A stretch of DNA of 64,000 bases from Paraphysomonas bandaiensis. Its lineage: Eukaryota; Protista; Chrysophyceae. The position numbers and the translations under genes were made by a program. Positions within the stretch are counted from its first letter, which is position 1. Each line of letters starts with the position of its first letter. Below are positions 3,138 through 56,731 of the stretch, piece after piece. Where the stretch lies: NCBI GenBank assembly GCA_965644295.1, contig CBFFRP010000219.1, positions 124,001 through 188,000 of the forward strand, in the 5' to 3' direction. The notes under the pieces were generated by a model, which saw nothing but the letters and a program-made list of their open reading frames with translations, had not been told where the DNA came from and made no database searches.

Positions 3138-3518
3138 TCTTCTATAGTTCGTGACGTGTGATAGATATCTAGCTCGAAAGTAGAGTATTTTGAAGTCTTA
3201 TAGCCTGTTGCTCTGGGCTGGTGAATGTAAATATAGTGCTTGAGTCCGTTTGACAAATAAGGAAAATGTTTGCGTATTTTACAATTTTTTGGACACGTAC
3301 AATTTCCAGAGTCTTTAGAGTAACAGTGAAAGGCTGATATTGAAGCCTTTGTAAAACACTATATCTGCTTCGTGAGTGAAACTATTCATTCTTGGTTGAC
3401 TAAAATAGTAGGAGCTAGACAAAAAATTCAGATTTAGGACTATAACGGATACTTAAAATATACTGTACCAATCATTTTTGAATAGGAGAGCTGATAATAG
3501 CTATTAATTATTAATTAC

Positions 3519-3811
3519 TATTAGAATATGGACTGTATCCTAGTATATTCAATGTGGTACTTGAAGACAATGTACGAGAATACAGTGAAGTATGGTGATG
3601 TGTAGATGCTGTTATGATATTGAGAAAACTGAAATAGTTTGCTCTTTCAAGATATGTTTAGTAGCGAAAGGTCTACAGAAGTAGTGATTTATGCATGGCA
3701 CAAAACGAGCTTGTGTTGTTTAACACAATTCGTGTAAACGATATTAATAAATCTATCTAGTCTAACAACTTAATCTCTCTTTGATCTAAGTAAAATGAGC
3801 ATTTCCCAACA
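3519..3811 (+). repeat. 5' LTR (293 bp, TATTAG...CCAACA)
   Basis: No differences from 8681-8973 seen in a by-eye comparison. Confidence 0.97.
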
Positions 3812-6800
3812 TGGTAGCGAGCGAGGAGGAGAGAAGGAGGATAGAGGAGTAGTTCCTCAGTTCAACGAGACTAACGTTGAACAATGGATTGAGGACTTCG
3901 AGACATTCCTTATGAGGAAGGAACAAAGCGAGGTAGCGGTGGAACTGCCACCTAAGGAGAGCGACTTCGGGGAGCAGCCACTTACGTTGATGGAGGAGAA
4001 GGCGTACAGACAGGCTGTGAAGAGGTATTGGAAGGCGAACGCCATAGCTTATTCTTACTGCAGGGATGCGGTGCAGCATTCCCCGAAAGCGCTGCGTAAA
4101 TTCCATCTTACCCACAAAGCGTTCAAGGCAGAAGGGAGTGGTGTAAACAGGTTCAAAACACATGTAATGATTGATGAGTTGAAGAAGTGTTTTGCTGGAG
4201 GGAAGCAAAATAGGATCAGTGACCTCTTAACTCAATATGGTTCTTTCCGTATGCGTCCGGAGGAGACGGCGAAGGACTACGTACTACGGTTCGAACTACT
4301 GCTGAAGGAACTACAGGAGCAGCAGCAGGATATCTCGGAGGTATCAAAAACAAGTCGACTACGAGAAGGCTTGCTCAATGAAGAGTATGCTCAACTGAGA
4401 GTTGGATTATACTTGATGGATGATGATGTTAATTATGTAACTGTATCACGTAAGATAGAAGGCTATGATGATACTATGGCTGGGAAGGAAGCGTTGGAGA
4501 AGAAGCGTAAAAGAGTGGAGGAGCTGAACCTGATAGACAGTAAGAAACGATATCGCAGAGAGAGGGATCATCGTAAGAAGAACAACGGTAAGAAGAAGCC
4601 GATGAAGAAGGATACAGAGATTACAGGGCAGCGACCTGGAAGTGCCGAATATACTGGGTGCAGAAATTGTAAGTCAAAGGAACATCTTGCCATCGATTGT
4701 CCAGCATCGAAAAAGAAGTACTCGCAAAGCAAGAGCAAGGCTGTGAGGTTTCAAGATGGAAGGAAACCAGACAAAAGACTACTTACAGTTGAAAACATCA
4801 GGCGTGGAGAGCCAGCGGATTTGTCTGACGAAGACGAAGCAAATATGATCGAGCAACAGGAAGAGTATCATTTGTCATGTAATGTGTATGAGACGAATAT
4901 ATGCAGTAGTGTGCATGAGGATATTCACTATACATACATTGATACCTGTTGTTCGTCATCAATGTTTTTGATAAATGATGTGAATATACTTGATAGTCAT
5001 ATGCACACATCAAAGGTTATTAATGGTTCGAAAAAAGGGTCAGAGATATGCGTCACGAGTGTAGGTTCCCGTGGAGCATGGAAGAACATTGAGGTATCAA
5101 GTCAGATAAATCGGTGTCTTTGTTCTGGACGGAAGTTGAACGATATGGGATATCGATTTACTGTATGGTATGGTATACAGATATATGACAGAAATACGGA
5201 TGAGCTGGTGTTGGAGGGACCTATGAAGAATGGAATGACTGCTGTGCCAACACAGCAGTTATTGGAGCTTCCAGACGTATCGACATCCAGTGATTCAGAA
5301 GTAAATCTCAGTGACCGTACGGGTGAGGATGAACTGGAGCTGTTACATAGGAGAGCGGGTCATTTTAACAAGCATGCGTTGGTAGAAGCCCACAAAAGAA
5401 TGCTAATTATTGGGACTGGACTGAAACGAAAACATCTCTCGAAACGTGTTTCCAAAGAACAGTGTCTATGTGATGTATGCGCCAGGGCGAAGATCACCAG
5501 AGTAAGTTTTCGGACAAAGGATGAGGACTCCGTTCGTCCAAATTTCTCGGCCGATATAGCAGTATACTTAAATTGTCCAGCTCGAGGAGGGGAAATATAT
5601 GTGCTCAAACTAACACACCATGCCAGTCGGATGTTCTGGTCGGAAGGGCTTGTTCATAGGACTGGGTCATCGGTACTGCAGGTTTTCAAGAAGATTTTTG
5701 AAGGAGATGTGAAAAGGTACAAATTAGAAATGCATCATTACCATGCAGATGGAGCAGGGGAGCTAATATGTGATGAGCTGCGACAATATCTTAGGTCACA
5801 GGGTTGCTATCAACATACGTGGAGCTCTACGGACTCTCCTGAGATGAACGCGATTGAGGAGCGGAAATTCAGGACCTGTGGTGAGATGACATTAGCGATG
5901 CTGATTCAGTCAGGATTGCCTTCACAGTTTTGGCTAGATGCCTACATGGCAGCCAGGTACATATTAATTCGATTGCCTACAAAGACAGCGAAGGGGTATA
6001 TGTCCCCTCTTGAATTTTTGACTGGTGAGGCTCCCAACCTGAAATATCTCAGAGTATGGGGGTGTCGTGCGTATGTCCTCACTACAAAGGCGGATCGACG
6101 GAAAGACTGGGACGACAAGGCCCTTATCGGATATCTGATAGGATATTCAGATGAAAAGGTAGGATATGATGTATATCTACCTGCGACTGATAGGGTCGTC
6201 ACGTCGGTACATGTATTAACTGATGAGTCCATACCGTCACGCTCGGAGAGCTATTTCGCTGAGATAGATGCTCTTCGAGTGAAGGAGGCCGAGAGACCGA
6301 AAATTGTGTCTGACTATGCGGGCTTAGAAGGTACATATCATATTGATGATGAGGATGGTCTTCTCTACAAGACCACGAGAGTAGTAGAACGAAAGGGGGT
6401 AATAGTAGCCTATCGATCTCTGGTAACTGCAGGTCGGAAGCATATCGAGCACCGGGTGCCGATTCACGTCGAGGACGTAGTGCGAATGACTGCAGAAACT
6501 CCCGGGAATACCGGATATATAGGAAAGGGGGACGCCCTGAGTACTATGCCAGCCAGGGTGCTGGACCAGGGAAGACCTGGAGGGTTACAGGAGAGTCCTG
6601 ACCCAACCTGTCAGGAGACAGCTGTGAGGTTGCAGACCTCTGAAGACTATGAGTCTGGGGTTGTGAGCGGGGCTCCTCCCACAACGCACGATGTGCGTGC
6701 TCAGGATGAGCAAGGTACGGGTTCTTATATACCTCGTCGACCGATTGAACTAGATGGTGATGGTCGGGTCCGACGCAAACGGCTGCAGCGGAGACTGGCA

Positions 6801-8506
6801 AACGCGTCAGTTTTAGGAGAGATTAATATGGTTGAAGTACCGGATGCGCATAATATTGATCTTAACCATGCAGAGACAGAAGATATCAAGATACCAAATT
6901 CATATGCCGAGGCAGAGAGATCTCCACAGTATCAACAATGGAGAAAAGCTCGAATGGTGGAGAAGACATCATTGCTGAAAAGACGTGTCTTGAAGATCGT
7001 GAAAATTCCAAGCGGAGTGAAATTAGTTAGAGCGAAATATGTGCATACGGTGAAGCGAGACATACTAGGGAATATAGTAAAGTACAAGGCTCGGCTAGTG
7101 GCATTAGGAAATCTCCAAGAGAAGAAGGAGGAGGAGCCGTCCACTTTCGCTCCAGTGGTTAAGGGTATAACCATTAGACTAGTGTTAGCGATTGCGTTTA
7201 TGTTACAGATGCATGTGCATCAATTAGATGTATCATCCGCATTTTGCTATGCAGATCTGGAGGATGACGTGTATATGGCACCTCCACCAGATGAGGAATT
7301 ACTAGCTGGATGGTGTTTTCAACTAATCAAGGCATTGTATGGACTGCGATCTTCACCGCGACAGTGGAATAAACATATTGACAAGTTTATTAAATCATTG
7401 CATTTTACTCCGTGTATTTTGGATACGTGTTTGTATATGCGATGGAGTAACGGAAAACTGCATTTATTATTGATATATGTTGATGATATCATAATTGCAT
7501 CCGCTGATCTGACTTACTTGGAAAGCGTAAAGCGTAGGTTCTGTGAAACATTCGAGATGCATGATCTGGGAGTGTGTAAGCGATTTCTGAACATCAGGAT
7601 AACCAGAGGAGAAAATTGGTATATGTTAGATCAATCTGAGTATGCTAAGAATATTATCAAGAAATTCAGCTCAGTTATGGGAAAGAGTAGTAAGAATAAG
7701 GAGGCCCCACTACCTACTAATGTTCAGGATCTGTTGGCAGAGGAACGTGAACTTACGGAGGAGCAGAAGCAGTGGGTTGACTCATTTCCGTATCGGCAAA
7801 TTATTGGAGCAGTGTTGTATCTAGCAATGCATACTAGACCTGATCTGGCTTATGCAGTGGGGTTATTGTCTCGATTTAGTAGTTGTCCGACATATGCATC
7901 GTGCAAACTGGCGATTCACTTATTGAAATATTTGCGTGGAACAATTGATGAGGGCATCAGATTCAGTGGGAGTGAGTTCGACTTACATGTGTTCAGTGAT
8001 TCAGATTGGGCTGGTGATAGACTGACTCGGCGATCGACAACAGGATACATTGTGTTCTTATGTGCAGGCGCATTGGCCTGGCAGTCTAAACTACAGACCA
8101 CAGTTGCAACTTCGAGCATGGAATCTGAATATATGGCGGAGTATGCGGCTATGCAAGAACTGGTGTGGCTTCGGGGGTGTTCAAGGAGCTCGGGCTCTTA
8201 GTTGCGAAGCCGACTCCATTCTTTATGGATAGCAAGAGTGCGAAAGATCTCTCCGAGAATCCTGTGTATCATAAGAGGTCGAAGCATATAGACATCAAGT
8301 ATCACTGGGTGAGAGAGCATGTAAATGGAAAATTTCCTACGGCAAAGTTGATTCATGTGTCGACGGATGATATGGCGGCTGATATTTTCACGAAGGCATT
8401 GTCAACGAAACTTTTCAGTCGTCATGAGAAAACTATTACCGGGGTTAAGAGAAGTGTGTCAACCAGAGTTGAGGAGCAGCAGAAGAAGCGACCCCGAAGA
8501 GGTTAA
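3795..8506 (+). CDS. Copia Gag-Pol polyprotein with a 1-nt frameshift in RNase H at ~8173-8177
   Basis: Zn knuckle CRNCKSKEHLAIDC; protease YIDTCCS; integrase HRRAGH...CDVC, SADI, HADGAGE, NAIEER; RT KARLVALG, QLDVSSAF, YGLRSSPRQW, YVDD; RNase H FSDSDWAGD, continuing in another frame as FMDSKSA...KRSKHIDIKYHWVRE...MAADIFTKAL. Confidence 0.95.
3812..3823 (+). other. Primer-binding site (tRNA-iMet-like)
   Basis: TGGTAGCGAGCG directly follows the 5' LTR; TGG is complementary to tRNA CCA. The tRNA identity is inferred. Confidence 0.75.
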
Positions 8507-37170: not shown

Positions 37171-39157
37171 CTATGAGGAAAGTGATGATATTTGACTCTG
37201 TACTGTTTCCATCCAACCATTCATGTCGTCACCAGTTTCAAAACCTACTTCAACTGTCACAACTCCTGTCTCCGACATTATATGAAGTTCGGAATCCTGC
37301 GATCCAATTGACTCATTGGGATCACCGTGTGGCGAAGTGCTATTGTCTATTAGATCTTCGAATATTAGAGTGTGGGCACCCAATACGAAGTTACTTGTCA
37401 CCCGAACACTACTCGAGCGAGTCACCAAAGCGTCAATATGAACTTTGGATCCTAGTTCTGAGGTTTTGCGAATGAAAAGCCTATTCTGATTAATACCCAA
37501 CCACACCTATATAGAACAAGTAACGTTACCACAAATTCTGACAGCTGTTTAAGATACCAAGGGGAAAAAACATTGAAAAACAGAGATCATACCTTCTTCT
37601 TTACATTCTGCTTCGAAATGAGCCCCCTTCTACCCCTCATCACGAAGACATTTGACGATTTTTCTGCAGGTGGTATAGGAGTGCAATTTTTCAACGAAAG
37701 GGATCTCTCTGAAGGGGGTGTGGGTGTACGGAGGGGAGACGTACGGGCCGTCCGCGATGGACTTTCTGGACATGGAGAACTAGATTTGGGATGGGCTTCC
37801 GCTAAAATATTACATATTAAATATTAACGTAGTATTCAACATAGCATACGCTCTCAGCAGTGTACGCAATATAACGAGAGACATGAAACAAAATCACCTA
37901 AATCGTGTACAACATCGTTACCTTCAGCTTGTACGAAATCTCCGAATTCAAAGTCATCATCATTCTCCGAATTAGTACAGCCCACTACAACTTCATCAGT
38001 CGAGGGCGGAATCGGAGCTGCGACTACTTTCTTTTTAGCAGGGAGTGATTCAGCGGCTTGCTTCTGAGGAGGCAGAGGCGGATCGGATTTAGCTTGCTCC
38101 TCAGTGTGCTGCGAAAAGTGATTAAAATCAGCGAAAGTCCCAAAAGATTCCGGTTCGGCGATAACGCCTTGAATTCCAGTACCGGCAGTATTTAGAACAC
38201 GGGTATACAACTCCGGTTCTGGAAGCATATTGACTAGCAAGATCAGATCATCAATGGATAGTCGCTGGGAAGGGTCCGGGCGGAGGCAGGCAGCAATAAG
38301 AGTGTGAAACTCGGGAGGCCAGGGAGAGGACTCGGGGACGTGAAAAGACCCCGACAAAACAGCTAATGTAGAAAGGCCATCTATAGGGCTTTCGAATGGA
38401 GTGCGGGAAAATAACATCGAAAATATGGTGCACCCTATGCCCCATACATCTGTTTTCCCATCGACAGTGCACTGGCTCGGTGTGTCGAAGAGCTCGGGAG
38501 CACGAAACGAAGCAGTAGTATTGCTTGCCGCATCCTCTTGCACAAGCAGGGCCTGACTACGGCTTGTAATTTCCGTCACAAGTGGCTGTGCACTTCCAAA
38601 ATCAGTAATGACTGGTGTCATATTTCTATCCAATAAGATGTTCGCTGGCTTGAAATCTCCGTGGCGATAACCAGCGCTATGAATCGCCTTGGTACCATTC
38701 ACGCACCCAGATATAATTCTATTCGCAAGAGACCGTTTTGAAAGACCACACTCAGGAAATCCTGGACCTTTCTCAATAACATCTTGAAGAGACATACCAA
38801 GCAACGGCAAAACAAGAAAAGCAACGTACTGGTTCGACTTATTTGTACTGAATGAACTTTCAATCAATGCGAGAACGTTTTCATGCTTAATCATGGATAA
38901 AAGTTGTATCTCCTTTTTAGCTTCTTCGATCTGGCTCTCAGTTTGGCATATCATTTTCTTTAGTGCAAAGTGCTCACTCTGGCCGGAGCGTTTTATTTTG
39001 TACACATAAGCAAAAGCCCCTTCGCCAATTTGCTCCTTTGCATAACAGGTCAGTCATATGAGATCAAAACAACTAAAAAAGAACTAACCTCAATCAAATA
39101 CTTTCCACCGTTAACATCCACAGTGCGTGACTTCTTCAGTAAGTGATTGATCAACAT
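37171..39157 (-). CDS. NAK-family (STK16-like) Ser/Thr kinase with a C-terminal PH-like domain, multi-exon
   Basis: QIGEGAFAYVY, FALKKM, HGDFKPANILL, ITDFGS, NAK-type activation segment SRSQALLVQEDAASNTTASFRAPELF, KTDVWGIGC. C-terminal VMRGRRGLISK...KVWLGINQNRLFIRK...GWMETV. Confidence 0.9.
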
Positions 39158-39851
39158 GTTGGATACAACAATATAACAAAATCTCGCTGAAAATGATTAC
39201 TGCTTACTACTCATGGGTACGACAAGTGTCTTGTAAATACACGCAATGGCAAACAAGTCAGATATTCCAGTTATTGAAGTATCTGGTACAATCTCGTGAG
39301 CAAGTAAGCATAATGTAGAGTGTAGTGGTGAATATATACATACACACAGAGCTTGTACAGTTGCATTATAAAATTTTTCGCTCCAAGTACACACCCTACG
39401 CACTCTGTATACCATATATCTATGTGGTATTCCTATTGTAGCACAGACTGAAAATACACTACAATATATACTGTGTATATTGTACGAACGAGAAGTAAGG
39501 ATTTACTATGTAAACTACGTACCGTATCGTAAGTATTCCTACTGTGATATCCACATGGATATAAACATTTTTTTGATTTTGTGTTGTATTCTCGACAAAA
39601 AAATTATTTTGCTTTTCCTGAACTGTTCTTTGTATGGGTCAGGAAATGGTACGAATAAGGGTTCATGTATGTACATGTATCTGGTATCCGGGTGGAATCT
39701 ATACTCATATGCGAAGTCAATCATATATTAGTTAGTTAGGAGTGAACACTCATATATATAAACAACTAATTTAATATATAGGTACGGTTGATATATATCT
39801 ATATGTAATTTATATCTATCTGCTTATATGTTCGACAGGATCATACTCGCC

Positions 39852-42800
39852 ATGAATTCGTTTACAGATTGGCCGAATAATCCGGAATTATTAGTGAACA
39901 AGCGAGTGGAGGTCGCGTGGAAAAATAATCGTATGTACAAGGGGTGGGTGATGGGGTATAGTAGAGAGACTAAAATGCATAGTGTTCTGTTCGAAGACGG
40001 ACAGGAGAAACACTACAACATGTTCACCAAAACATTTCGAATAGTAAGGCGTATCATATATCTGCTTATAAATAGGGTTGATATGTATGGCAGGAAGGAG
40101 AAGCCAGACGTTGGAAGCCGGAGGACTCAAAGGCAGCAGTGCGACATTCAGTACCTCAAACATCTCGAAACCCCCTGCACACTGGGTACGGATACTCTTC
40201 TGGTGTAGGTGGAACAGCACTGACGACAAGTGCATACTCAACGGCACCGTATATGTCTAGGTATAATAAATGTTAGTCTTCAAATATCACGATATGAGCT
40301 ATTTGTTTTAGGACACCAGGATCCCAAACTTCCGTCGTATTTCATGTTCTGTTGGATCCACATTGCGTAGATGAGAACGATAGGGTTGTAATAAACGGAA
40401 ATCTTCCAACACTGAGTGGATGGGGTGCTGGGATAGATATGGTTCAGTCTGCTACGAATCCCAGTATTTGGTCAATATCTTTGAACGTTCCATTCAGTAT
40501 GACAGACTCTTGTGTTTATGGCATATTCAAACATCGCTACGAAATTGTGACTGCAGATGGAAACATTGTGGAAGGAAAGGCCGACAGATCTGAACAGACG
40601 CTTCGACATCAGTACTTTCATATATTTCGACCTAATTATCGTCATTCAAGAGTACGTTTGCATATATATGTTAATTTCACAGTATGAGTTGTTTTCAGTT
40701 CCGCGGAATGGTGGAACCTACCGGCAAAAGTGCTTATCAGCAATTCTGCAGCGAGTTAATAGCACTATACACAACTGACCAGATTAGTATACGCGAGGCC
40801 TTTACGTATCATAGAAACCTGACTGCATGTGTCACTAATGCACGACGGGTACACGCGGAGGAGATATTCGAGGACGCCCTCGAGGAGGTGAGATATTTAT
40901 ATCACCAGAGAAGATGGATTCATATTTACACTAGGCGGAGCTGTCCACGAATATTTCCGCATTGTATATAGGATTGATTGGTTCATTTGGATTAACCTCT
41001 GAGGAAAATGTGTATAGCACAGGTCAAGGAGGCATGGGGACATTCGGTACGTCTTACACGTATGTAAACGGGATCAAGGTTGAGAATCCCAGAGTCGGTG
41101 CATATGGAGTATCAACTAACATTACCAAGCGGCGTCCGCCAAAACCAACTGTATGGGTTTTTCACTGTGCTAATAATTTGGATGTTGCTGCTCTATATCA
41201 ATTGCATTGGGAAGAAGAATTTGGACCTAATTATCGCTGGGTAAGTCGTGGAGTTGCCGAAGCCATTGAGCGTCTGTCTGAGCATGGTTTCTATGAATGG
41301 TTGAAACTGATTCCACTGGCCACGAAATGTAACGTCAATCCTCATATTGCGTGTAATATTAAAGATTACGGGGAAAGAGAGCGTAAGTTCATGGCAACAA
41401 CAGACAATTTGATATCATTGATAGTGGACCAGCATAGTCTCATCACCACAGAAAGGATGCGGGTGTTACCCCTCACGGGAACAACACCTGTTTGTGCGGA
41501 TTCTAGTTGTGGTGATGTGATTGGTTTTGGAGGAAAACTTGGAGCAGAAAATGAATTCTCTGTGTTCAAGATGGAAACACTAGCTCGTGGTTGGTTGCAA
41601 GCTCTTATCGTTCACGCCCCGTCGTTGAATATAGTGTCTGAAATTGTTCGTCGAGGTTTGATCGAGACCACCAACGAGATCCTACAGCATGATCTTCTTG
41701 CTGCAATTTCTCTCAGAGTTGAGGAAGAAGAATGGTCTAAACTTGGATTTGAATCACTTGAGTGTATGCTACAGCAAATGAACTTCCTGTGCTGTCCTGA
41801 GATCGCCGTTGGACTGCTGAAAAATTCTGCTGTCGATAATGAAACCGAAACTCTCGTTCACCTTATAGATTTATGCGTCCGAGAAAAGAAATGGAAAACA
41901 GAGACTGCTCCCGACTCGAACGAAAGTAAAGTCAGTCACGAAGATAGTCACAAATCTTTAGGAATGGGTAATTTATTAACAGGCCTAGTGGGTATATGGC
42001 ATGAACTAAATTGCGCGGCCAAAGAGTGGATCTGTAGAAAGCACAACGCTGAACCGGCCCCTGAAATGGTTACTGTTGAAGAGCGCCGAGATAATAATCC
42101 GTACAATTGGGCTTTTAATGCTTGGGGCACTATGTACAGCGGCGAAAAACGACCGAAAAAACTAACAGAGAGTGAGAAGAGAGAGCAACTTCGTGTGCAT
42201 ATGGAGCTGGCTTTATATGATATCAACTCCCTCATGCATGTTCCTTTCTTCTCATCTAACCCTACTGGGCTGCTGTTCGAGCTTGGAAGATGCTGGTTTA
42301 TGCGAGCTTCGAATGTTCAGCAAGCAACATTGGAATTAGATGCGCTGTGTTTTATTGGGAGCAAAGACATCTCACGCGCTTTTGCTATATATATACCTCC
42401 CCTTGCAGCTTTCCTGGAATCAGCAACCCTCAAACTAATTAGAGCACTTGTATCGCTAGGATCAACCTACATCGATTCACTCCGTACTGTGACTAGCACT
42501 TTGAATTCTCGTTCTGCTTTAGGTCATCTTCTAATTTATCATTTGGCTCAAACAATGTGGTCCGGTGAGGCAGAACCGACGTTGTCTCTACCCACTGATT
42601 TTCAACCCCCTCTAAACTCTGTTCTTGAACAGTGTGTGTTTTGGCACGAAATATCAATATGGATCGAAAACGGCATCGAAGACAGTATTCTACGAAGTCT
42701 TTTTGCATCTGTCAAAGGTCTTATATTTGAGTGTGTGAATAGTATTATGAATGGATCCTGCACGCTTCGGTGCATGCACATCATTATCCAGAACGAGTCA

Positions 42801-45800
42801 GCTTTTTTTTTTCTGTTGCGTGAGTTTGGATGTGTTGTGAGTGGCATGCAGGGAAGTGATGACCTCCAACCTTATGTGAAGAGTGTTCATGAGTTCGATA
42901 ATTCATTAGGGCAATTACAAACTTATGCGTCTTTCTTTTGTTCGTGTGGAATACGTGTTGAAGCGGCGAGTGTGAGGTCATTAGTTGAAAATTTAAGAAT
43001 TCGTTATGATTCTATTCAGTGGAATGAACTCCAAGGGGCTTTTGATGGAGTCCTGGCGATGAAATACGTTGGATGGCTGTATCAGCTGCGTGGTAGTGAG
43101 TTATTTTTACAGCAGTGGAGGTTAATTGGACGCGATATATGCATCGATGCTGTGGAAGGAGCTCGAACGGTTCTGATGGAAGGAGAAAACAGCAACGACA
43201 CTTCTCAACAAGATGTGACAGAAAGTGTAATGGCGGATCTGGCAGCACTGCAACGGGAAGAAGATGAGGACGAGGGAGCTTTTGCCGCACGAGTTGCCTT
43301 AGTAGCGGAAGAAATGCAGGATAGAGTGCAGGCTCAGTTCGATGTTCAAGATCGAAGAAATGATATTCTTTCACAGGGTGAGTGTAAATTGTCAAGATTT
43401 TGTAAATGCTTGATATATGTAATCGCAGTTGACGAAGTTGAACTATCTCAAGATGTTGTTGTCAATAAGTTAATACCGGAAGTGTATACTGCGTGGAGAA
43501 AATTGGCTGTGGACACATTTTCAGGAGCTTTGGGTATAAAGGAATTGGAGAACTATTTCATAGATTTAAAAACAGATGCACAAATACTGGAGGAATTGTC
43601 ACTGCTCTCAACATGTGATTTTTCAGGCACCCCAATGGACAGTATGTCTTCTTCTGTTTTTCTGCAGCAAACACTTACCCGTTTAAAGGATTATCACTTT
43701 CTCTGCAAACTTCATACATGGCTGCCGTCATTAATTAAGCTTCATCAACAGTTACAATCACTGTTCGCTAATTCAGTGAATGAAGATTCGTTTCATATCA
43801 CGATGCAGCGCGCTTTGGTTGATATTCAGTTACGAATTAAAACTTTGGACTTGCAGTCTATTTCTGGAGTTGTTTTCTCCTTGAAAGATGTTTTCTCCCG
43901 CTACACTGCTGATCGATTGGACTTTTTGTCTGTTCTGAGTAGCTCACCAAACTTAATTGCCTGGCTACTGCAGAGAAGTAGCACCGAAGAATTCAACCGC
44001 CTTCTCCAAGTTGTGAGGCCTTGTACAGATGAGCCCAGGATGCTGAGTGCCATTGCTTCTTTGGTACATATTCGAACAATTCTTATACAAACTCTGTACG
44101 TCTATCCTCCTTACGAATCGCTGGAAAATTTCTTGGATTCTGTCAGCACTAATTTAGACTTGGAAGATCCCACGGTATCTGGTAATGCATTGTGGCACCT
44201 CAACAATATTATCAGTAGCTTCGAAGGCCTGATGGAGGTATTTGAAAAACAGACAAGAAGTCCTGGCGTCAAATCTTGTTATGACCTTAAAGAGATTCTC
44301 GACCATGGTACTTTCGTTTTAAAGGCCTCATCGAATCATGATTCTGTGCTCACTGTTGAGTTAGCTGCGAAAATGACCCTGGATGACCCCAAAATGGATG
44401 ATATACCACCTGGTGTCACTGTTGAGTCCATGGAGTATCTGTTGGATTTGCGTAGCAAGTTACTAATGACTGAAATCCCAGCTGAGCTTGAAGCTCAATT
44501 GAATGCTTCGGTTATGGTTGATGCCTTTGTCCAGCAATTGCAAGTGATGGCAGAACTCAGCGATGTGCTGGTGAATTTGTGTTCTACCGGCCATGTTGGA
44601 TATCAAAAAGGTGTGAATATGATTTTGCAGTAAAATAGTCTTTATTGTAACATCTTTCTAGGTTTCGAATTAAAGGTGAAATTTACCCTGGATAGTGACT
44701 TGTTTCTGCGCAAAGAGTTAATGAGGTTGCAACGCGAGTCATCAAATTGGGCAATAGAAGTTAAAGAATGCAGAACAAAGTATTTCTATCTCAACTTTTA
44801 TAGCATGCGCGAAATACTGCGATTGCGCTCGCTTTTGGAGACTGTAGTCCATCAGGAAAAAGAGGAGATGGATCATATGTGTGAGACGCCATCACCGTGC
44901 AATGCACCTTCAGATGTTCCTGAAGAACCCCCCCGAGGATTACCCCAATGTGATACCTCCGTTAATAACATATATCTTATCATAGACTCTATGGAACAAT
45001 TGGGATTTCAAAGGTAACTTGCATGATTTTTCACAATACTCCTTACGCTTCCTAGGGACTGGTGCTACGCGTCGTTGAGACGTACTGGATATAATTTAGA
45101 GGATGCAATTGAATTTTGCTTTTCGAATTCACAAATGATGGATCGTTTCGTAGTTGAAGACTCCACACAATTGTTAGAAGGGTTTTATACAGGGGATGAA
45201 CACTGCGATATATGTCATGATCCCGATGACACAGCAGCGTACAACGAAGGAGATATTGCTAATCCAGTGGATGAAATTCTTGGCTTGTTGCATTTAATTA
45301 GTTCTTCTGTTGACGTACTTCATGCTCTCAGGATGGTGCAGCTATGGAAAGATACGATGGATGATGAGAAATCACTTCTTAGTCGACTTGGCTCTATATT
45401 ATCCACCCTTTTTGACAGTACAGTACAGAAACCTCGTAAAATTGATGTTCCTGTTGATGGCACTGCAAATAAAGCCGACATGCTTATTCTCTTGAATGAT
45501 GATTCAGAAAAGCAACTTCCTGTATTTGTTGCGTGCACTGAAGATCCACTCTTGGTTATTGACACTGTGCTGTCTGTGTACATCCGGCGTGGTCGCCTAC
45601 CTGAACCAGGGGAAGTTATATTTTGCACACCAGAGACAACATCGGAGGAGATTAATATAATACTACTTCGATTTATACTAGCGAAGAAGTATGATAAGCA
45701 TGAATCTATAATGTGTATAGCGGATTTACACTCGCTGCCATATACTTTGCAATGTTTTCTTGTTGAAAAAATGAAAGCATTGTTCACGGAATTTGGCCAG

Positions 45801-48800
45801 GAGTATGCATCAACACTAGTTATTATCAGTGGCTTGCCACGCCAGGTGGCTTTGAATGCACTGTCATCTCACTCAGTAGACTTACCTCCATTACCTGTTA
45901 CACAACTCCGTAGGAGCTGTGCGGAAGCATTTGAAAAGCATATGGGTGACACAATATGCGTGGCAAGTCGTATCAATGGTGGAGGTAAGACTCACTTCAT
46001 TCAGAATGACATTGCCCAGAGGCAGATGTGCGGTGAATTGATTCTCTACAAAAAGGTGCCCTTGAGGGAGTCTACTACGTCGAAACACTTAGTTGCGTTG
46101 CTCTCTGCGGACTGTGCACTACGAAAAATGGTTTCCTCGCCTGAAACTGCCCATGCAAAGCTTGCATTTCACATCGACATTTCCCACATTATACCATCTG
46201 CAGCCAATACGATGTTGTTTCAGGTATATTTTTATTTGTGTATGTATTGGTTGATATAATATACCAGTTGCTGTTGGTGGGTGTGTTGAGAGACTCTGAA
46301 TCGTGTCGAGTTTACTATCGGAATCCTGTAGATATTGTCAGGATTGAACTTCCGAATTCACCAAGGAATAAGACGACGGAAGCACTTCGATTATGTAACC
46401 TTTTTCCGCAACAGATATTGGAAGTAAATTCAGAAAACTTATCATTTACGAGACCTGTTGTGCAGAAACAAGCAACTGACATGTACCCTTCTCCAGGAAC
46501 CAAGATCTCGCTTGAAGACTACGTCGAGCTGCAACATGTGTGCAAGTGGCTACGTGCGGTGCGAGGGGGAAAGGTTGAGTACGGTATGTGAAATGAGCAC
46601 TGCTCTGTATATTGTCATTGTTTTCTTCTTCAGGCGGTAGTATGTACAACCCTACATATTCGCCGTGGACTGACGATAATATAACTGCCGAGGAATGTTT
46701 TGCACTGTTGTCTGCTGAATGTTGTAAACAGGATGGCCCTGCGCCTTATCCGTCTTGGGCGATCTTTCACTCATTTATTTTATTTATGCATATGCAATTC
46801 AATGCTTTGGAGAAGTACCCCTTGTTGCAAGGCGAAGTTTTGTGTGGTATTGATGGGTTAGAAAATTTCAAGCACGTTTTTGTCGGACTATTAATTGAGA
46901 CATCAACAGATTTTTCCCTCCGATCAGTCCCTCAAGTCGATAGAGTGGGTCCTTTGCCAGGTTCACACTTTGCGTCTGGAGACGAGTTTGAAATTGCATT
47001 AGATATCATGCCTGAAAATGATATCGCCGAACTTCCCCCGCCGCCATCAGTGGTACTGGAAACGAGTCGTGAGGTTCGGAAGGGTGCCCAGCTGTCGGGT
47101 TCGCTTAACCCACCTGCTCTGGTGCAGCAATCCAGTGAAGAAGTGGCACGAAGATTTCAGAATATGGTTTCTTGGGAAGATAGCGATCATCCTGTTGTTG
47201 CTTTTAAAATGGACAGATATCAAGAAGTGTTAGGAGTTGATATACTTAGCTTGAATTCGAGATTTGTTGATCGATATATTCAGGGGCAATTGAAGCGTAG
47301 TCTAGAAGAAAACCGCTTTGACTTCAACAGAGACTGGACTAAAATAACGAATGAAGAGGGGGTCCTTAAACTACGACAAATAGAAGGGTTGTCTGAGCAC
47401 CACAGAGGCGGAGTTATGGCTCTCGAGTCTGGCTATGTCATGACTGTTGACAACATGCTCAAGATGTTGAGCATTCAGCTTCGCATGCGATTTAACTTAC
47501 CGGTAGTAATAATGGGAGAAACAGGATGCGGGTATGCAGTATGCTGATATTTTTAACATTTGATAATATTTCTTTCGTTTAGGAAGAGTACGTTAATTAG
47601 AAATATGTGTGCTATTTTAGGCAGCTCACTGCACATCTTGAACATTCACGGTGGTATGCAAGATACCGATATCATTGGTTGGATGAGACAGAAAATCGAC
47701 ATTGCTTTACGTATGAGAGACCCGACTGAAAGACTTGTCATACTCCTGGATGAAATCAACACGTGCAATTGTATGGGTCTCTTCAAAGAAATTGTATGCG
47801 ATCGTACACTTAACGGTCAACCATTTCCCTCTAAAATGAAAATCATTGCAGCATGTAACCCATATCGACTCCGTACCACTACAAACCTTTATGGTGGTGA
47901 AGAAATGGCTGGATTGGTATTTGACAACGCACAACATTTTAATTCCTCTAAAATGGAAAACGTTGGTACTGGTATCAAGGACCCTCTCAGAAATCTTGTG
48001 TACCGCGTACATCCTTTACCAGAGTCACTTATAGATCATATATTTGACTTCGGCTCTCTCTCCAGTGATACAGAGAGCTTATATATCAAAGCGATGCTTC
48101 GGAAACAGTTGGAGATGTACACTGAAAATTCTGATGCCGAATCTCGAGCGTCTCCTCAGGAAAGACGAGAACAGCCGTTGTATCAATTCTACTCCCGTAT
48201 GTCTCAATTTGATGAGTTTGTAGAGGTGTTTTCTACGCTAATATGTGAAGCTCAAGAGTGCATTCGGCAATTGGCTGATGGGGAAAGGTCGTCTGCATCA
48301 CTAAGAGATGTTGCACGCTGCATTAAAGTGTTTATATGGTTCGGTGAGCACCTCGCAAGTACTGTCGGCTCAAAGGAACAGTGGTCGCGTGAAGAGTTTT
48401 TTAATATTAAACCTCGAGCTCAGAAATATGTTCGTAGGGCTGTCATCCTCTCTCTGAGCTATTGCTATCATGCGCGACTGGTATGTATTGCGCAGAATAT
48501 GATCCCTTAACCGTATTTTAACTTTTATGGTGTAGCCACGTGCAGAACGGCGAATATTAATCAACACCATAACCAATACATGGAGGTCATTTCAAGTTAC
48601 AGCTACACCGGGAGCTTATAGTGGCCTGTATAGTCAAGGCTATGCACATTACTTTCGAGCGAGTTGTCGTTGGCTTAACCTGGACTACAGCAGTTTCATA
48701 AGTATACTAGAAGAGACGCAAAGAGAGTTTGTATCCGTCATGAACTTAGGGGACGGTATTGCCCTTAACGAAGCTCTATGTGAAAATCTTTTCATGATAT

Positions 48801-51800
48801 TATGCTCCATTCTGAATCAAATTCCTATTTTTGTAATTGGAAAACCAGGCTCATCAAAGTCACTTGCAATGGGACTTATCCAGGCCAATCTTAATGGAGA
48901 TGCATCTGATAATGAATTTTTAAAATCGTTACCAGCAGTTGAAGTGTTTTCCTATCAATGCTCTCCTCTGTCTACGTCCGCCGGAATCGAACAGGCTTTT
49001 GAATCTGCTCGTCGGTACAAACGTGAGGCTTCTAACACAGTTGTGGTCGTACTTCTTGATGAAGTGGGATTGGCGGAACAGAGTCCTCATCTACCATTGA
49101 AAGTATTGCACAAGGTTCTGGATGAGGCTGGAGGAAGAGAGGCGGTGGTCGGTATATCTAACTGGTCACTTGATCCGGCGAAAATGAATCGAGCTGTACA
49201 TTTGTATCGTCCAGCTCCCACTGTGGAAGATCTCTCACTTACTGCAGAGGGTATGGTACGTTCTGCTAATCTCAAAGGTTACCTCCAAGAAATTGCGAGG
49301 GCTTATAATGAAATATATCACAAACAAGAACATCCGGATTTTTGGGGATTACGAGAGTTCTACAGCACCGTACGAGCTATCAACAACTCCTTAACTCGAA
49401 AGAAGGAAACATCTTGCATCGAGGCTGTCGCGTTAGATGGAGAAATGTTGATGCGTGCGATATTACGAAATTATGGCGGAAGACCTAATGAAATGGAAAG
49501 TATTGTGAAATGTTTCTTCAGGCGTCTGGGACTTCCAGTGTCGGAGTCTTGGAGGGAAACAACGATAGAGTCCTTAGTTCGGAGCAATTTACAGGAGCCA
49601 GAGGCTCGTCATCTTATGTTGTTGACGAAAAACAATGCTGCGCTCAGTCTGTTGTTGGATCGAAATATTTTACATCAGGAGGATACAGAAATAATATTTG
49701 GATCAGACTTCCCATTAGATCAGAATGACTTACAAGTTTGCGTGAATATTCAGCGCGTAAAGCTTTGTATGGCTGAAGGAATCACTGTTGTTCTAGTGCA
49801 TTGTGAATCACTATACGAATCTTTGTATGACCTGTTAAATCAGCATTATGTGGAGTATGGAGGTCAGATTTACGTCAGACTTGCTTTTGGGACTTACACA
49901 CGTCTCTGTCCTATTCATCGGATGTTTCGTGTAGTTGTAGTTGTAGAGAAAGAAGAGGCCTACACTAAACTCGCCCCTCCGCTGTTAAATAGGTTTGAAA
50001 AACAAGTATGAAATGAGCATTTTGTGCTGTTTGTAAGCTGAACTTTGTGTTTCAGGTTTTCGAGAGGTCAGATGTGCTTAGAGCGTCTCACGACACAGTT
50101 TTGACGCGACTTTATAAGTTTGTGTCAGCGTTTGCTTCTGCTGGTAGTTCATTGAACTCCACATTGATGAAAACAAATGTGTCCTGGACCGCTCTCCGCA
50201 GTGCGTTTTGTGGTTTCCATTCTGATATGCTCAGTTCACTCATAATAGCTACCGAATCACAGTATGCAAATAACCCCCTTCACGCAGATAATGAAGAACT
50301 CAGTGACGAAGAAGTTTTGTTTTGTGAATGTGTGAGGCGGTTGCTTTGGATCGCAACTCCGGAGGCTACTTGCAAGCTGATAACAACCGATGGTGGTTGT
50401 AGATTAGCAGACTTAAATCGGGAATTTGGAATTGACTGTCGTAGCGAATACTTTAACTATCAGTTTCATTCATCTCTCCCTGGGTTTTCGACGGCAATGC
50501 TTGACCAGTGGAGCGATAAATTGGGGTCACAAATTATTCTAATGACCTATTCAGCACTTACTAATGATGCAGCCTCTATAATTCGTGATCAGGGGTTTGC
50601 TGTCACGCACGTTGTTTTGCATGAGCTGGACCAGGAAAGAGAGTTGCGACAGTCTGTTTCAGATTTTTTTAAAAAATCGGTGTCAGGTAGCACGCTTTTG
50701 GTGCAATGTGATCCTCTGGCAACTTCTCGAAGACGAATCGAGCATGCAAAATTTATGATTGAGTTAATAAGAGCAAAGAAGATAAAGCAGATGGAGGCGG
50801 AAAACAAATTTCTTTTTGAAAAAGGTGATGAGCATTATAGAGACGGGCATGAGTTTAAAGCTAGTTCAAACGACGGAATAGATCAGAAACTTCAACCGCC
50901 AGCTGATGTATGTGAGGACTTGGATCGGCATGGGTATGAAAGATCTGGTGAATCTCATGGAATTCATGTTGTTTTGCTTGTACATTTGCCTCGTGGGGAA
51001 ACCAGTGACGAATCAACTTACTCTGTAGACTTTGACACAAGGTGGAGAGTTGCTTTTGTCGATTCGATATCATCTGCGGATGAAAGTGGGTTGCCTGATG
51101 CAGTGTGTATGATTGGCAAAACTATTATTGACGTGTTCAATGAGCTTGATGTACAGAAAGTTTTAGTCAAGACGTTTAGGACTGCGTTGTCCCGTATGCG
51201 ATGCGCATATGACAGGTCTAATGACGATGTGAGGCGGCAAATTTTAAATGTAACCAAATGCTTAAGGAACTCAGAATTTGTAGAAATTATCAAACGAACT
51301 ATTCATAGCCTCCTTCAATACCAGTTTGGATGCAGTAAAGTCAATTGTATCACTGATGCGGCTCTAAATGAACGTGAGCTGCAGCTGGGAGGTTCATTTC
51401 AGGGTGCCCTTCATCGTCAAATATTAGGCACTATATCATCCTTGTTTGCTGTCGCGTTAAGTCATATGGACAGAAATGAAAACCTGGCCTTGTACTTAGA
51501 GGATGAATTGCGTGACTTATGGATCTATTTGTGCAGTCAATCTCTCAATGAATCGTCATTGATGTTGCAGTTAAAGACAAGATCAAAAAATATATATCGT
51601 GCACATCGTTCCACTTCCGTGCAAAATGTTGAGGACATTGTGGAAGTTAAAAACGATTCATTTGGCTCATGTGGAACGTTTATCTCACAGTTTCCGTACA
51701 GTTTCTTTATTATTCCTATTATTGACACGATGCGGAAAGTAAGTGAAGGAAGAGGGGAATCCCAATTAGTGAGTCAGTTTTCGACTTTGTGTCTTCAGTG

Positions 51801-54800
51801 TGGGTTGTCTGACGAACTCTCCCCCGTACTCATCGCGCGCTATACTTATGATTTGGTATGCATGAAATGTCATCATGTAAAAAGCTTAGATAGAACTCGT
51901 CAATCCGAAGTGGTTTTGCACATTCTGAACAGAGTTTCGGGACGAGAAATTGACATTTCGACGGATGAGTTTGAAGTTGACATTGACGAACAAAGTTTCT
52001 CATTGAATGCAGACTCGTCTATTGGTGGTGTGACTCGACTTCCACAAATTCACTATCGTTTTTGGAAATACGAACGCATTCTGGAATTATATTTTGATAT
52101 TATGGATACTGGAGTGGTTCCTATTGACAACTGCGTTGCTTTTATGATGAATATTGAATCTGAATTGGATAATAGCATCCACATGAAAATGATGTACATG
52201 GTACTGGATAGCTTGGACCCATCTAAATTTCCTCCATTAAGTTTGCAATTGTGGAAATCCTGGTTTACCAAGCTTGCTGCTATTAGACCATCATTGATGT
52301 CTCTTGTTGATTTGTTAGAGAGTGACAGCGACAGACTTCTGGTAATTAAAACGTGGCACAAGTATCATTTCTACCAGATTTACGTTCGAAGTGTGGCTAT
52401 TCCGTTTGATTTGCCGGCAGCAAGTATCAATGAATTTGTATCTCACTTGAACAACATGCCATTGACATGTCCTGCTACGCTTCGTACGCTGTTAGCTCAC
52501 CTCGGACAGCTCTGTCTTAATAATTGGGATGAAGATGGCGGAATTCCTGGTGATTTTTTGTGTCCAATTACGCTCGAGCGTATGCAGGACCCTGTAGTTG
52601 CTGCTGATGGACATACTTACGAACGTGTTGCAATCCAGGAATGGTTTGCCAGAGGAATGAAAACTTCTCCCACAACTAACGAAGTTCTGACAACACAAAA
52701 CCTTCATCCCAATACTAATTTACGACGACGCCTTATTACTTCAAGAGGACAAGATTTAAAGCGATTTCTAGAGTATTTCATACTCGAAGTGCTATTGTCA
52801 CCGGTTTTTAGAAAAGATCTAGGACATAATATTATTGAAGATATTATTTGCATTGCCTCTGGCGGAACACTACATGGCCTTCCTGATAATGTGAAGCACA
52901 TCAAGAGTGTTTTTCCGTCTGATAAAAGCGTTGAATATATCTTAAAGGAGTTGTTCAAACTCCAAACCACTTCATGTTATGATAACGTAATTGAGGCAAA
53001 TATTGAGAAGAGACTCGTGGAGTTGTTTTCAACATGTAAATATATGGACTCTCCATTTAGCATTGCATATGTGGCCCTACAAGAAGATATTATTCGTGGT
53101 CATGAATCTCTGGCTGATATCACATTCGAGCATGTTGTAAAAATCAATAATGACAGAGAGATCTCATCAATATGCAATGCATTGCATGCCATAGGTCTGT
53201 ATAATACTTATTATTCGGCTTATATAACATTTATTTGATATAGCTTTGTGGCGTGTTCATCTGGAGTACCTGGCAAATATGACTACGAGATATAACGATG
53301 GTAGTATATCTGGAATCGCATTGTCGACAATTCAGGAAGTATGTGCTAGAGTGAGGCCTCTGCTTGAAGATAGACCTGATGAAATACCTGTGAGATCTGC
53401 TCGTCTATATTTTCTAAAGTTATTAGAGCGCCAGAGAGGTGTTTCCTTTGTACGAAATTCTCTTATGGTGGGGCCTATTTCTCATGAAGTATGGTTGAAA
53501 CAGTGGAAGGAATCGGATATCGGTTTTGCAAGGTTTTTGGGATCTAGTCGGTTGCCGAATTTAAATCCCTTTGTTGAAAATGCATTATTCAAAGAGGTTC
53601 ATGGAGTGCTTATGGATTACATGCAAACCGGAAATTTATCTTCCTTTGGTTTGTTTATATCTGAGTTCTTTTCGTCTCACACCAGTGGCGAAGTCTGCGG
53701 GGCACTTTTGTTATCGTGCTTTCATGAAATTTCATTGCTGGCATTGCTTCCCCTTGATTCCACAACACGAGTCAGAGAGCGTTCAGTTGCGCTTCAGAGA
53801 TGGTTACAGTCTGATGAAAACATGTGCAGTGCCAATGTGATGCACAAAAAAGCGATAATTATTTTCGGTCTGGGAAGCCTTCGTACACAGATGGAAAGCG
53901 CCTCCGCAACTATAAATGAGAAGCCATATGTAGGCCTGACCGAAAGTAGTTCCACTGCACAGATCTTTAACTTGCGACTATTAGTACACGTAGTAGCCAG
54001 TGTCATTGCATGTGAAGAATTAGAGCACCCATTTGGATTTTTCCATAGCCTAATGTTTCAACCCAGCAGTCTGAGTAACTCCTATTTCCCAACTATGCCA
54101 GAAGATGACACCAAGATGGCACAGAGTGTATTGGGAGGGAGGTGGTACGCTTGCCCGAATAATCACCCATTTTATGTGGATCGGTGTGGTACGTATATTT
54201 TGTAATTGTATGTGAAGTAACGAATATATATATGTCACTAGGTCGTCCAACAGTCATTCAAACTTGTGCGGCCTGTGGAGCTCGAATAGGAGGAGAAGAT
54301 CACAACCTTCTGAGTGATAACAAGGATCTCAACGGAGTTGGTTCTGGATACTACAAAAAGACAGAGCTGGAGGACAAATCAGAAAAGAATTACTGCGTTC
54401 GTACTGCAGAAGAAGAGCTTGAAAAATCGTTTTACACAACACGCACGCTGACCTCTTCTTCGGTTCGGGTGCTTCGAATATTAATGCACTCTGCGATGCT
54501 TGCAGGTCTATGTCTCGGAGGGAGTTCTTGGGAAAATGGGGCGAAGGCGATGCTTAATAAGGGATATTGTGATCCTACAGATTGGGGCACATTTCTGTAT
54601 GACAATTTGGTGTCTGATTGGGATATGTTGCGCGTATATTTGATGCGCTCAGTGGATGATGTGGCTCTCGTGATGCATACGATAGTGACGCAATGCAGTC
54701 ACGCCAAGTTTGTTAAACGCGACTGCGATATTGTGCCAGTTCCTGCGACACCATTGCCTAACGGAATACGGTTGCCAAATATTGAATCCTGTGATAATAG

Positions 54801-56731
54801 CAGGAGGTTTTTTACAAGTTTCTTCAAACCCATTGTTCGAGATTATTGGGAGGAGTATATAGATAAGGTTCACATAAAACCATTTACTTCGGAAAGCGAA
54901 AGTGGCCTCTCGAAAAAACTTGAAGAGATACAACGGCAATTTGAAGAAGACAAAGTTGATAGTGCTGCCGAACTCTTTGTCGCAGAACTCTTGGAGAAGG
55001 TTCCATATGTGGATATTTCCATCGAGGACAGGTGTGTGTCTTATCCAGGACTTTGGCGCATTCGCAAGCCATTTTGTTTTGAAGAATTTATAGTCGCCTT
55101 AAAGCAGATGCCGGGATCGCAAGATAGATTTCCTCTCCTATCTATGCTAGCAAACCAAGATGAAGAACAACTTGCTGCGTTGCGCCATATCCCTGAAGTG
55201 CTTCAATGGTTTAGATTGCTGCATGCACAGTATAATAGTCATATTGATCGTGAAACAGCGAGAAATAAGACAAATTCAGTTGCCATACTTGAAATATCTG
55301 GAGAGTCACCGGCAAAAGCGAGATGTGTTCAAATGGCTTTTGATGGCTTTTGTTCAGCTTGGAATAGTAGCTGGAGTGATGTACGAAGACATGGTTGTAT
55401 TCAATTTTCTTCGGAGTTCAATAGCCTGCGTATGACTCCATCTGTGCCTATTTCGTTTTCCTTACCCAATGAAATGGATGAGGGGAACTGTCCACTTGCC
55501 TTGATTCATTTTCTCATTGAAAAGCACAACGCATTTGCGCAGCTTGTTGACGAAGCATACTTAATGAGGGCACGCGAAACAAAGTCTCGGTGTAGTTCAC
55601 AATTAGCAATGGAGGAGAAATGTGCTCGTGTGCCTATCATTTCATCACGATTCTTGACCAATGTGCACACAATAAGATGTAGCATTGCGGAAGATCTAAT
55701 ACCCGTTCTAGAGAAGTATTGTATGCTGTCAGGAGATGGAGCCGATATGCGTCACAGTGAAAATCGTGGGGTATATGGCGGATATGATTTCGCCAAAGCT
55801 GAGGGTATTGTACTGGACAGGTACGACTGTTCATTGCATCAGTACGAGATGAAATGATATGAATGAGTATAGGTTTCTGGCTGACATTCCAGCTGTTGAT
55901 CTTGAGATGCAAGGTTTTACGTATTCTCAGGAACAGCATTTGCAGGTACTCGCACTATTGCCGGTGTTTCATGTAATAAATAGTTTTACATAGGGTGGCA
56001 TGGCACCTTTGCGACAAAAAATTAGCCAAGAACAGCTTTCTCCAGATGTTATACGTGCAATTCAGAGAGACGTGTCAACTCCTGCTCAAGCCCAGAAAAT
56101 TTTAGAGATTATTGAACAAGTCGTATCGTTTGTGAGTGCGACTGGGGGGTCGTTGGTACAGTCTTTAAGCGAAGATGTTGGTGATATGTTGCTCGAGAAG
56201 TATATGAGAAGTGTGTTACTGATTGACGAAGTTGTTGGCAGCAGAACGGTACTCCAACATGTAAGTTCATACTATGCTTATCACAGTTTTCTTACAATTT
56301 AGTAGACGGCATTGAAGCACTTGGAGTCTCTATGGGAGGTATTGTCAGATATCACTTGTTGTGATGCATTTAGTAAAGTTCATGCTGCATACAAAAAACC
56401 TATAAGCGAAAGGTAAATCACATGCGATGCTACTGTAAGTTTGTCAAGTGGTTTATGTTGCAGTGCAAGGGAGGACCTTATCAGTGCCTTTTCTAACCCA
56501 TCCTTCAATTCGAGTAAAATTTTATCGGTACTGAAGTCTTTTATACTGGAGTCGCTTCAGGAAAAAATAATGGCGGAAAACACACCTGTATTTGAATGTC
56601 TCGTGAACCTTGAGGTAGATGGTGTATTTCTAGCTGATGCAGAATGGTTTGTAAATAGCTTTCCATATTCGATTACAATCGCTGAAGTTGTCGATGCATT
56701 TGATATTATCAAAGAAAGTCGTAAGATTTAA
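39852..56731 (+). CDS. RNF213/mysterin-like giant AAA+ ATPase / E3 ligase (Tudor-CBM20-UBA-AAA+-U-box-RZ finger), multi-exon, roughly 5,200 aa by estimate
   Basis: RNF213-type motifs YFYLNFYSMREI, SRINGGGKT, YVMTVDNMLKMLSI, IMGETGCG|KST, LLDEINT, AACNPYR, LVYRVHPLP, IALNEALCEN, IGKPGSSKSLA, QCSPLST, LLDEVGLAEQSPHLPLKVLH, GISNWSLDPAKMNRA, FGSDFP, YESLYDLLNQ, PPLLNRFEK; RZ finger WYACPNNHPFYVDRC|GRP...CAACGARIGGEDH. Confidence 0.95.

Follow-up and report, generated by a model that had tools for sequence, protein, structure and literature searches.

A 64,000-nucleotide (nt) stretch of the genome of the chrysophyte Paraphysomonas bandaiensis (assembly GCA_965644295.1, contig CBFFRP010000219.1, positions 124,001 to 188,000 of the forward strand; hereafter the window) carries a single transcribed gene for a giant ubiquitin ligase (E3) related to RNF213 (mysterin). 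By sequence and predicted structure the product is a full-length, genuine member of that lineage, and a U-box stands at the site that is occupied by a RING in animals. The protein is very likely an RNF213-family ligase with the order Tudor, linker, CBM20, N-arm, UBA, six-AAA ring, E3 module with the U-box, RZ finger and C-terminal domain, and would act in the manner of animal RNF213. RNF213 is a major human disease (Moyamoya) and immunity gene; patients carry mutations in its RING, and a Shigella effector targets this domain. The features of the gene are collected in Table 1.

Searches and fold predictions were run exon by exon, the spliced protein being used for its length, stops and motif positions. 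Matches to RNF213 in the Protein Data Bank (PDB) are collinear across successive exons; exon 5, which belongs to the N-arm, had no match in the PDB by sequence search. The front of exon 13 matches AAA5/6 of dynein by fold comparison (Z ~10). A profile of 27 homologues of this exon, which also holds the E3 module, matches RNF213 at E 1e-55. The profile was required, as the 1,073-residue frame with the U-box, searched alone against the PDB, returned U-boxes only and did not find RNF213. An AlphaFold model of the exon (predicted local distance difference test score, pLDDT, 82; predicted template modelling score, pTM, 0.68) aligns with the cryo-electron microscopy structures of RNF213 at E 7e-21 to 8e-18 and template modelling (TM) scores of 0.53-0.58 over ~1,150 columns. 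To our knowledge, nothing else in the PDB resembles the RNF213 E3 module (E3-back, shell and core).

A preliminary description of this DNA, made from the letters alone, had recognized an RNF213-type AAA+ core with intact Walker A/B pairs. This reading holds, in that the Walker A and B motifs of AAA3 and AAA4 are all intact and the RNF213 matches around them are collinear. No Walker B motif was found near the AAA2-like P-loop at 45972-45995. Mouse RNF213 shows the same pattern of nucleotide sites, and its AAA2 binds ATP without hydrolysis (PMC7311170), which a P-loop lacking a nearby Walker B fits. The family features found in the gene are a six-AAA ring with catalytic-type AAA3 and AAA4, the E3 module, the RZ finger, the C-terminal domain and CBM20. 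The zinc-binding C4HC3 RING is absent, a U-box without zinc ligands being found at its position, and the gene is therefore classed as a variant, not a typical member, of the RNF213 family.

The C4HC3 RING of RNF213, from which the protein takes its name, is inserted in the E3-back. In the window ligase this place is taken by a U-box that scores well above the gathering cut-off of PF04564 (21.4 bits). It matches the U-boxes of plant U-box (PUB) proteins at E 1e-13 with 47% identity, and its predicted fold superposes on the U-box of OsCIE1 with a Z of 13.5 and a root-mean-square deviation (rmsd) of 1.9 Å over 74 residues. The Miz-type model PF11789 matches it weakly, at 23.2 bits. The domain has a single cysteine, which indicates that it is zinc-free. 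The profile aligns the columns of the U-box exactly with human CSICLGDAKDPVCLPCDH, where the RING begins, and the conserved flanking blocks continue unbroken on both sides, from which we infer that the U-box occupies the RING site. The earlier proposal of a U-box in place of the animal RING is thus upheld column for column.

The RZ finger, first placed at ~54142-54303, is recognized by PF20173 and has the spacing C-x3-H-x6-C-x8-C-x2-C-x8-H with six of six Cys/His present. In ZNFX1 and RNF213, four residues with this spacing bind zinc and the other two are the catalytic Cys and His (bioRxiv 10.1101/2025.10.14.682297). RNF213 ubiquitylates lipopolysaccharide (LPS) through its RZ finger, and ZNFX1 ubiquitylates RNA (PMC12440826; bioRxiv 10.1101/2025.10.14.682297). 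A predicted intron (54189-54241) splits the finger in the window gene. The metagenomic orthologue L001 has a break in the same region, and the RZ finger of a second metagenomic orthologue, L006, is unsplit.

The Tudor, CBM20 and UBA domains are real domains as judged from profiles and models, CBM20 by its fold. Pfam Tudor models (PF21743, PTM/DIR17-like; PF18104) score 19.2 bits (cut-off 27.2) and 17 bits on the window protein, both below cut-off; the Tudor of L001, 54% identical to that of the window, scores 29.0 bits against 27.2. A profile of these two sequences matches solved Tudor domains, with E 2.3e-6 for 7de9_A and 4e-4 to 3e-3 for KDM4A/B/C. CBM20 likewise scores below its Pfam cut-off (17.5 and 23.3 bits, respectively). 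An AlphaFold model of exon 3 (pLDDT 78.7) matches CBM20 starch-binding domains only, at E 3e-6 and TM 0.6-0.7, and the domain is 55% identical to that of L001 and 40% identical to the start of a protein of the brown alga Ectocarpus fasciculatus, CAM9257784.1. The UBA of the window gene is interrupted by an intron and was scored on its second half only (13.7 bits; PF00627 cut-off 22.4), whereas the unsplit UBAs of the orthologues in L001 and Ectocarpus pass this cut-off at 22.7 and 28.3 bits. Conservation of the UBA extends over four organisms, and a profile of these four sequences matches the UBA of USP5 at E 3.6e-7 as well as the UBAs of USP13 and RAD23A.

These results agree with the preliminary placing of a Tudor-like N-terminus at ~39890-40045, a CBM20-like domain at ~40330-40600 and a UBA at ~44980-45130. 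The Tudor and UBA had further been taken for additions to the animal plan, which is consistent with what is seen in mammals. The UBA profile matches mouse RNF213 on its two flanks only, indicating that animals have no detectable UBA in this linker. Human RNF213 has CBM20, and at the place of the Tudor its N-terminus is unstructured for 398 residues (PMC12440826).

The gene is transcribed, and all its parts lie in one spliced transcript. The spliced model (39852-56731, plus strand) has 19 exons and encodes 5,330 residues with no internal stop, from an ATG at 39852 to a stop codon at 56729-56731; its 18 introns are all GT..AG and 42-55 nt long. The model reproduces exactly the limits proposed at the outset. 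For splice evidence, public contigs were compared with 39400-45350 (5,951 nt). Introns 1-7 (42-51 nt) are skipped as GT..AG introns in contigs of runs X1, X3 and X4. X1 and X3 are "organism A" runs with one contig of ~14.2 kb each, their RNA status being a guess; X4 is a confirmed marine metatranscriptome with five contigs of 313-2,121 nt. The DNA-like run X11 holds an unspliced stretch in which none of introns 1-7 is skipped. The X1 contig extends from 39780 past 45350 with 9,002 nt of further sequence, and length arithmetic, with the predicted introns subtracted, puts its end at ~54.7 kb, beyond the U-box and the RZ finger. Besides the seven introns confirmed in RNA, a single ~14.2-kb spliced contig therefore links the Tudor exon to a point past the RZ finger, as the idea of one joined gene implies. 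Removal of a 57-nt intron in the 5' untranslated region makes ATG 39852 the first start codon, and the open reading frame (ORF) of L001 likewise opens with M immediately before a conserved DWPN motif. At the predicted introns, the flanking exon ends abut or nearly abut in L001 and L006, which are near-intronless, and in the Ectocarpus protein.

That several genes, or a decayed gene, were joined by reading across ORFs is hardly credible. A bacterial-style ORF list does cut the region into ~15 pieces, and the in-frame stop at 55855 at first resembled the end of the gene. These points are outweighed by the single spliced contig from 39780 to beyond 45350 with its 9,002 nt of extra sequence, by the absence of stops from the 19-exon model, and by the collinearity of every piece with one Ectocarpus protein of 4,958 residues. 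A gene end at the stop 55855-55857 was rejected, since collinearity with the L001 ORF and with residues 4744-4952 of the Ectocarpus protein extends into the downstream frames; beyond this stop the reading frame is regained through a 73-nt micro-exon (55873-55945) followed by three further exons. A first intron at 40205-40311 was also rejected, as the RNA contigs resolve the region into the introns 40044-40093 and 40261-40311. The in-frame 51-nt intron at 43378-43428 is free of stops, lies inside a 1,232-residue open frame, and is visible only through the RNA contigs.

Table 1. Features of the RNF213-type gene (positions are those of the window; aa, residues of the spliced protein).
Feature	Position	Strand	Basis or remark
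5' untranslated region intron, 57 nt	39782-39838	+	spliced in one marine metatranscriptome contig (run X4; joint 39779>39837, cut +2)
Exons 1-5	39852-40043, 40094-40260, 40312-40651, 40699-40887, 40935-43377	+	RNA contigs
Exons 6-8	43429-44610, 44662-45013, 45056-46223	+	inner ends from RNA contigs; 3' end of exon 8 predicted
Exons 9-12	46268-46583, 46634-47531, 47583-48480, 48536-50005	+	predicted
Exons 13-15	50056-53194, 53244-54188, 54242-55820	+	predicted
Exons 16-19	55873-55945, 55994-56260, 56306-56412, 56464-56731	+	predicted, collinear with orthologues
Introns 1-4	40044-40093, 40261-40311, 40652-40698, 40888-40934	+	spliced out in RNA contigs
Introns 5-7	43378-43428, 44611-44661, 45014-45055	+	spliced out in RNA contigs
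Tudor (aa 13-64)	39888-40043	+	wholly in exon 1
CBM20 (aa 127-229)	40331-40639	+	in exon 3; assigned by fold
UBA (aa 1607-1647)	44967-45013 + 45056-45131	+	split by intron 45014-45055 (RNA contigs X1, X3)
AAA2-like P-loop INGGGKTH (GGGKT)	45972-45995	+	AAA2 assignment by position only
AAA3 Walker A GETGCGKS	47515-47531 + 47583-47589	+	split by predicted intron
AAA3 Walker B VILLDE	47737-47754	+	motif placement
AAA4 Walker A GKPGSSKS	48839-48862	+	motif placement
AAA4 Walker B VVVLLDE	49043-49063	+	motif placement
Exon 13	50056-53194	+	rear of AAA ring, hinge, E3 module (E3-back/shell) with U-box
U-box (aa 4035-4098)	52543-52734	+	PF04564, 60.8 bits, E 1.5e-16
RZ finger (aa 4552-4587)	54143-54188 + 54242-54303	+	PF20173 matches both halves, ~27 bits
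C-terminal domain	54304-56731	+	human RNF213 4709-4940, E 3e-5; includes four short 3' exons past stop 55855 (micro-exon and last three)
ORF matching human RNF213 2370-2466	46597-47544		E 1e-8, PDB sequence search
ORF matching human RNF213 2485-2645	47557-48507		E 5e-31, PDB sequence search
ORF matching human RNF213 2743-3212	48536-50008		E 1.7e-82 (mouse 4e-86), PDB sequence search
ORF matching human RNF213 4484-4558	53228-54202		E 1e-6, PDB sequence search
ORF matching human RNF213 4709-4940	54163-55854		E 3e-5, PDB sequence search

An exhaustive search with the E3 exon returned 52 cluster representatives at E <1e-30, the best being 49% identical, and in at least 16 of the 52 a U-box lies within the matching E3-module sequence. 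One U-box cluster includes the Ectocarpus protein CAM9257784.1, recorded as an "unnamed protein product, partial", which follows exons 3-19 collinearly at 27-74% identity per exon and shares the CBM20-like start, UBA, AAA, U-box and RZ finger. It differs in that the record lacks the N-terminus (Tudor region), comes from a multicellular brown alga and is an uncharacterised entry. L001 has the Tudor, a CBM20-like domain, UBA, AAA, U-box and RZ finger, with 47-80% identity in nearly all exons and 39-41% in two N-terminal exons; L006 has the UBA, AAA, U-box and RZ finger. Neither L001 nor L006 has the genes that neighbour the window ligase. When the Ectocarpus protein was used for a length-matched search, only four full-length relatives appeared, all unnamed. 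With the U-box columns left out of the tree, the proteins that have a U-box group as a single clade; in its sister lineages the site carries a Cys-rich insert or is empty.

The occurrence of the UBA-U-box-RZ layout in Ectocarpus and several metagenomic eukaryotes makes it a marker of a clade, not a trait unique to P. bandaiensis. The architecture had been presented as uncharacterised and as that of a single-celled eukaryote. The former part stands, as no describing paper was found, literature searches having yielded none on a U-box, algal or protist RNF213. The latter part does not, given the multicellular Ectocarpus, the two metagenomic orthologues and the 16 or more clusters. The U-box variant is thus new to the literature as found, and is already present, unnamed, in public databases.

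Some homologues have unusual sequences at the U-box site. In P0003, a metagenomic member of the U-box clade with 1,918 residues, the flanks are kept and ~50 residues of the U-box core are cleanly gone at residues ~1376-1378, which reflects either a true loss or a gene prediction that passed over an exon. In the U-box/RING columns of P0008 (~2855-2920) and P0073 (~3700-3760), two long RNF213-like proteins that lie outside the U-box clade, there are Cys-rich inserts containing several CxxC pairs, neither of which is called as a RING by Pfam. A strict C3HC4 pattern found no RING in any long homologue, a pattern that is too strict in view of the P0008 and P0073 inserts.

Two courses can be considered for the origin of the U-box. 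It probably arrived by a swap of the RING insert for an ordinary U-box. Identity to nine other U-box loci of the same genome is 34-57%, the four closest having 48-57%; together with the 47% identity to a plant PUB, these values favour replacement of the RING insert over decay in place. That the U-box instead arose in place, an ancestral RNF213 RING having lost its zinc ligands, is plausible but on balance doubtful. The profile alignment that passes unbroken through the U-box onto the human RING would suit this origin, as would the sisters P0008 and P0073 with Cys-rich, RING-like inserts in the same columns. A decayed, divergent RING is not expected, however, to match the U-box consensus almost perfectly, nor to reach such identities to plant and same-genome U-boxes. 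Moreover, in animals the E3-back carries the RING between a pair of its helices (PMC7311170), where an exchange should be tolerated.

By analogy with animal RNF213, which works with UBE2L3 and also ubiquitylates non-protein substrates, the protein would be an ATP-gated machine in which ubiquitin passes from a Cys-reactive ubiquitin-conjugating enzyme (E2) to the RZ cysteine, and then to the substrate. The U-box would add a second dock of the conventional type for E2~ubiquitin, whose already deposited ubiquitin the UBA may bind, and CBM20 and Tudor may help to select or hold the target. A cell-autonomous antimicrobial or antiviral ligase, whose RZ finger would tag invading bacteria, viruses or non-protein surfaces with ubiquitin, is a possible though rather unlikely reading. 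It draws on the intact catalytic set of the RZ finger, the glycan-binding fold of CBM20, the activities of RNF213 on LPS and of ZNFX1 on RNA (PMC12440826; bioRxiv 10.1101/2025.10.14.682297), expression in a marine metatranscriptome, and the several diverged RNF213-like paralogues in the genome, a pattern common in immune families. Nothing in the sequence indicates a target, however, and a single-copy orthologue conserved across algae suits housekeeping as well as arms-race immunity. A role in constitutive cell functions rather than defence, for example in the quality control of lipid droplets, organelles or proteins, can be put forward just as tentatively. Such a role is suggested by one-to-one orthology, with a core that is strongly conserved among distantly related algae, by the single copy in the genome, and by steady presence in culture-derived contigs and marine metatranscriptomes; animal RNF213 also acts at lipid droplets. 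The sensor-like CBM20, Tudor and UBA domains, on the other hand, indicate no particular housekeeping substrate. A more far-reaching version of the defence reading is improbable. It would see an ancient, clade-wide redesign in which the RING site became a fully competent E2~ubiquitin dock and, with the UBA, formed a two-site ligase that amplifies its own action. This enzyme would be an algal innate-immune effector, coating the non-protein targets (surfaces of bacteria or viruses, or glycans) that are bound by CBM20 and Tudor. If true, RNF213-type defence would predate animals, and the purpose of the animal RING would be revealed.

Several points weigh against the reading of the gene as a U-box ligase that acts like animal RNF213. 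The evidence for the ligase comes from sequence and predicted structures, and the introns after 45350 are predicted. The tree is unrooted and has several long outgroup branches, so that the direction from RING to U-box is tentative. At the putative linchpin position, taken by reference to the U-boxes of CHIP and E4B to lie in the motif TSPTTNEVL (~52680), the residue is Asn. Among the seven long members of the clade that were compared, six have Asn there and P0023 has Arg; CHIP and E4B have Arg or Lys at this position. The human RNF213 RING is without a linchpin residue (PMC12440826). Finally, the animal RING is dispensable for RZ-dependent activity and its role is elusive (PMC7311170, PMC12440826), which leaves the added contribution of the U-box a matter of conjecture.

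A natural lineage in which the place of the RING keeps an E2-binding domain, here a textbook U-box, speaks for selection on E2 docking at this place. The U-box may also serve as a simpler, zinc-free module for studying this site. The extra UBA fits a recent picture in which ubiquitin binding controls RZ-type ligases; ubiquitin binding matters for the activity of ZNFX1 (bioRxiv 10.1101/2025.10.14.682297). More generally, stramenopiles, far outside animals, have RNF213-type machines of full length in which the RZ finger is intact.

The genome has a size of 62.6 Mb. Its HSP90 is 100% identical to an MMETSP transcript, 86% to the HSP90 of Ectocarpus and 85% to that of Ochromonas, which, with the occurrence of the ligase gene in marine metatranscriptomes, places the organism among marine ochrophytes. 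The E3 module of the window ligase is single-copy in the genome. Diverged RNF213-like AAA cores are found at G000:C108:132880-133470 (-), C298:636970-638286 (+) and C186:28837-30398 (-), with 34-54% identity over parts, and none of these three loci matches the E3 module of the window gene. The core on C108 sits in an uninterrupted open frame of 5,389 residues. Just upstream of the ligase, on the opposite strand, lies a protein kinase gene (37854-39005, minus strand; Pkinase, E 8e-35). A 1,468-residue open frame at 3795-8201 (plus strand), in which a Ty1/copia-type reverse transcriptase (RVT_2, E 7e-55) occurs together with an SH3-like domain of retroviral polymerases, is probably the polyprotein of a long terminal repeat (LTR) retrotransposon.

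Three known systems can be compared with the window ligase. Animal RNF213 (human and mouse; 6TAX, 7OIK, 8S24, 9G08) has the same order of CBM20, N-arm, dynein-like ring of six AAA units, E3 module, RZ finger and C-terminal domain, and is alike in the AAA3/AAA4 Walker motifs, the Cys/His spacing of the RZ finger and the fold of the E3 module. It differs in having a C4HC3 RING instead of the U-box, a pre-AAA linker without a detectable UBA (mouse) and an unstructured N-terminus instead of the Tudor (human); identity is low outside AAA3-AAA4 and amounts to 16% over the E3 exon. ZNFX1 is the nearest parallel, since it combines in one protein an RZ finger and a second, U-box/RING-like E2-binding domain (bioRxiv 10.1101/2025.10.14.682297). 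It is, however, a superfamily 1 (SF1) helicase with no AAA ring, and its second domain is a one-zinc Miz-type U-box/RING hybrid, not a canonical U-box. The plant PUBs (OsCIE1/PUB12, GmPUB13 and AtPUB14) are alike in both the sequence and the fold of the U-box (rmsd 0.7-1.9 Å). They are small armadillo (ARM)-repeat proteins with no catalytic module besides the U-box, whereas in the window the U-box is an insert in what is predicted to be a giant ligase of the transthiolating type.

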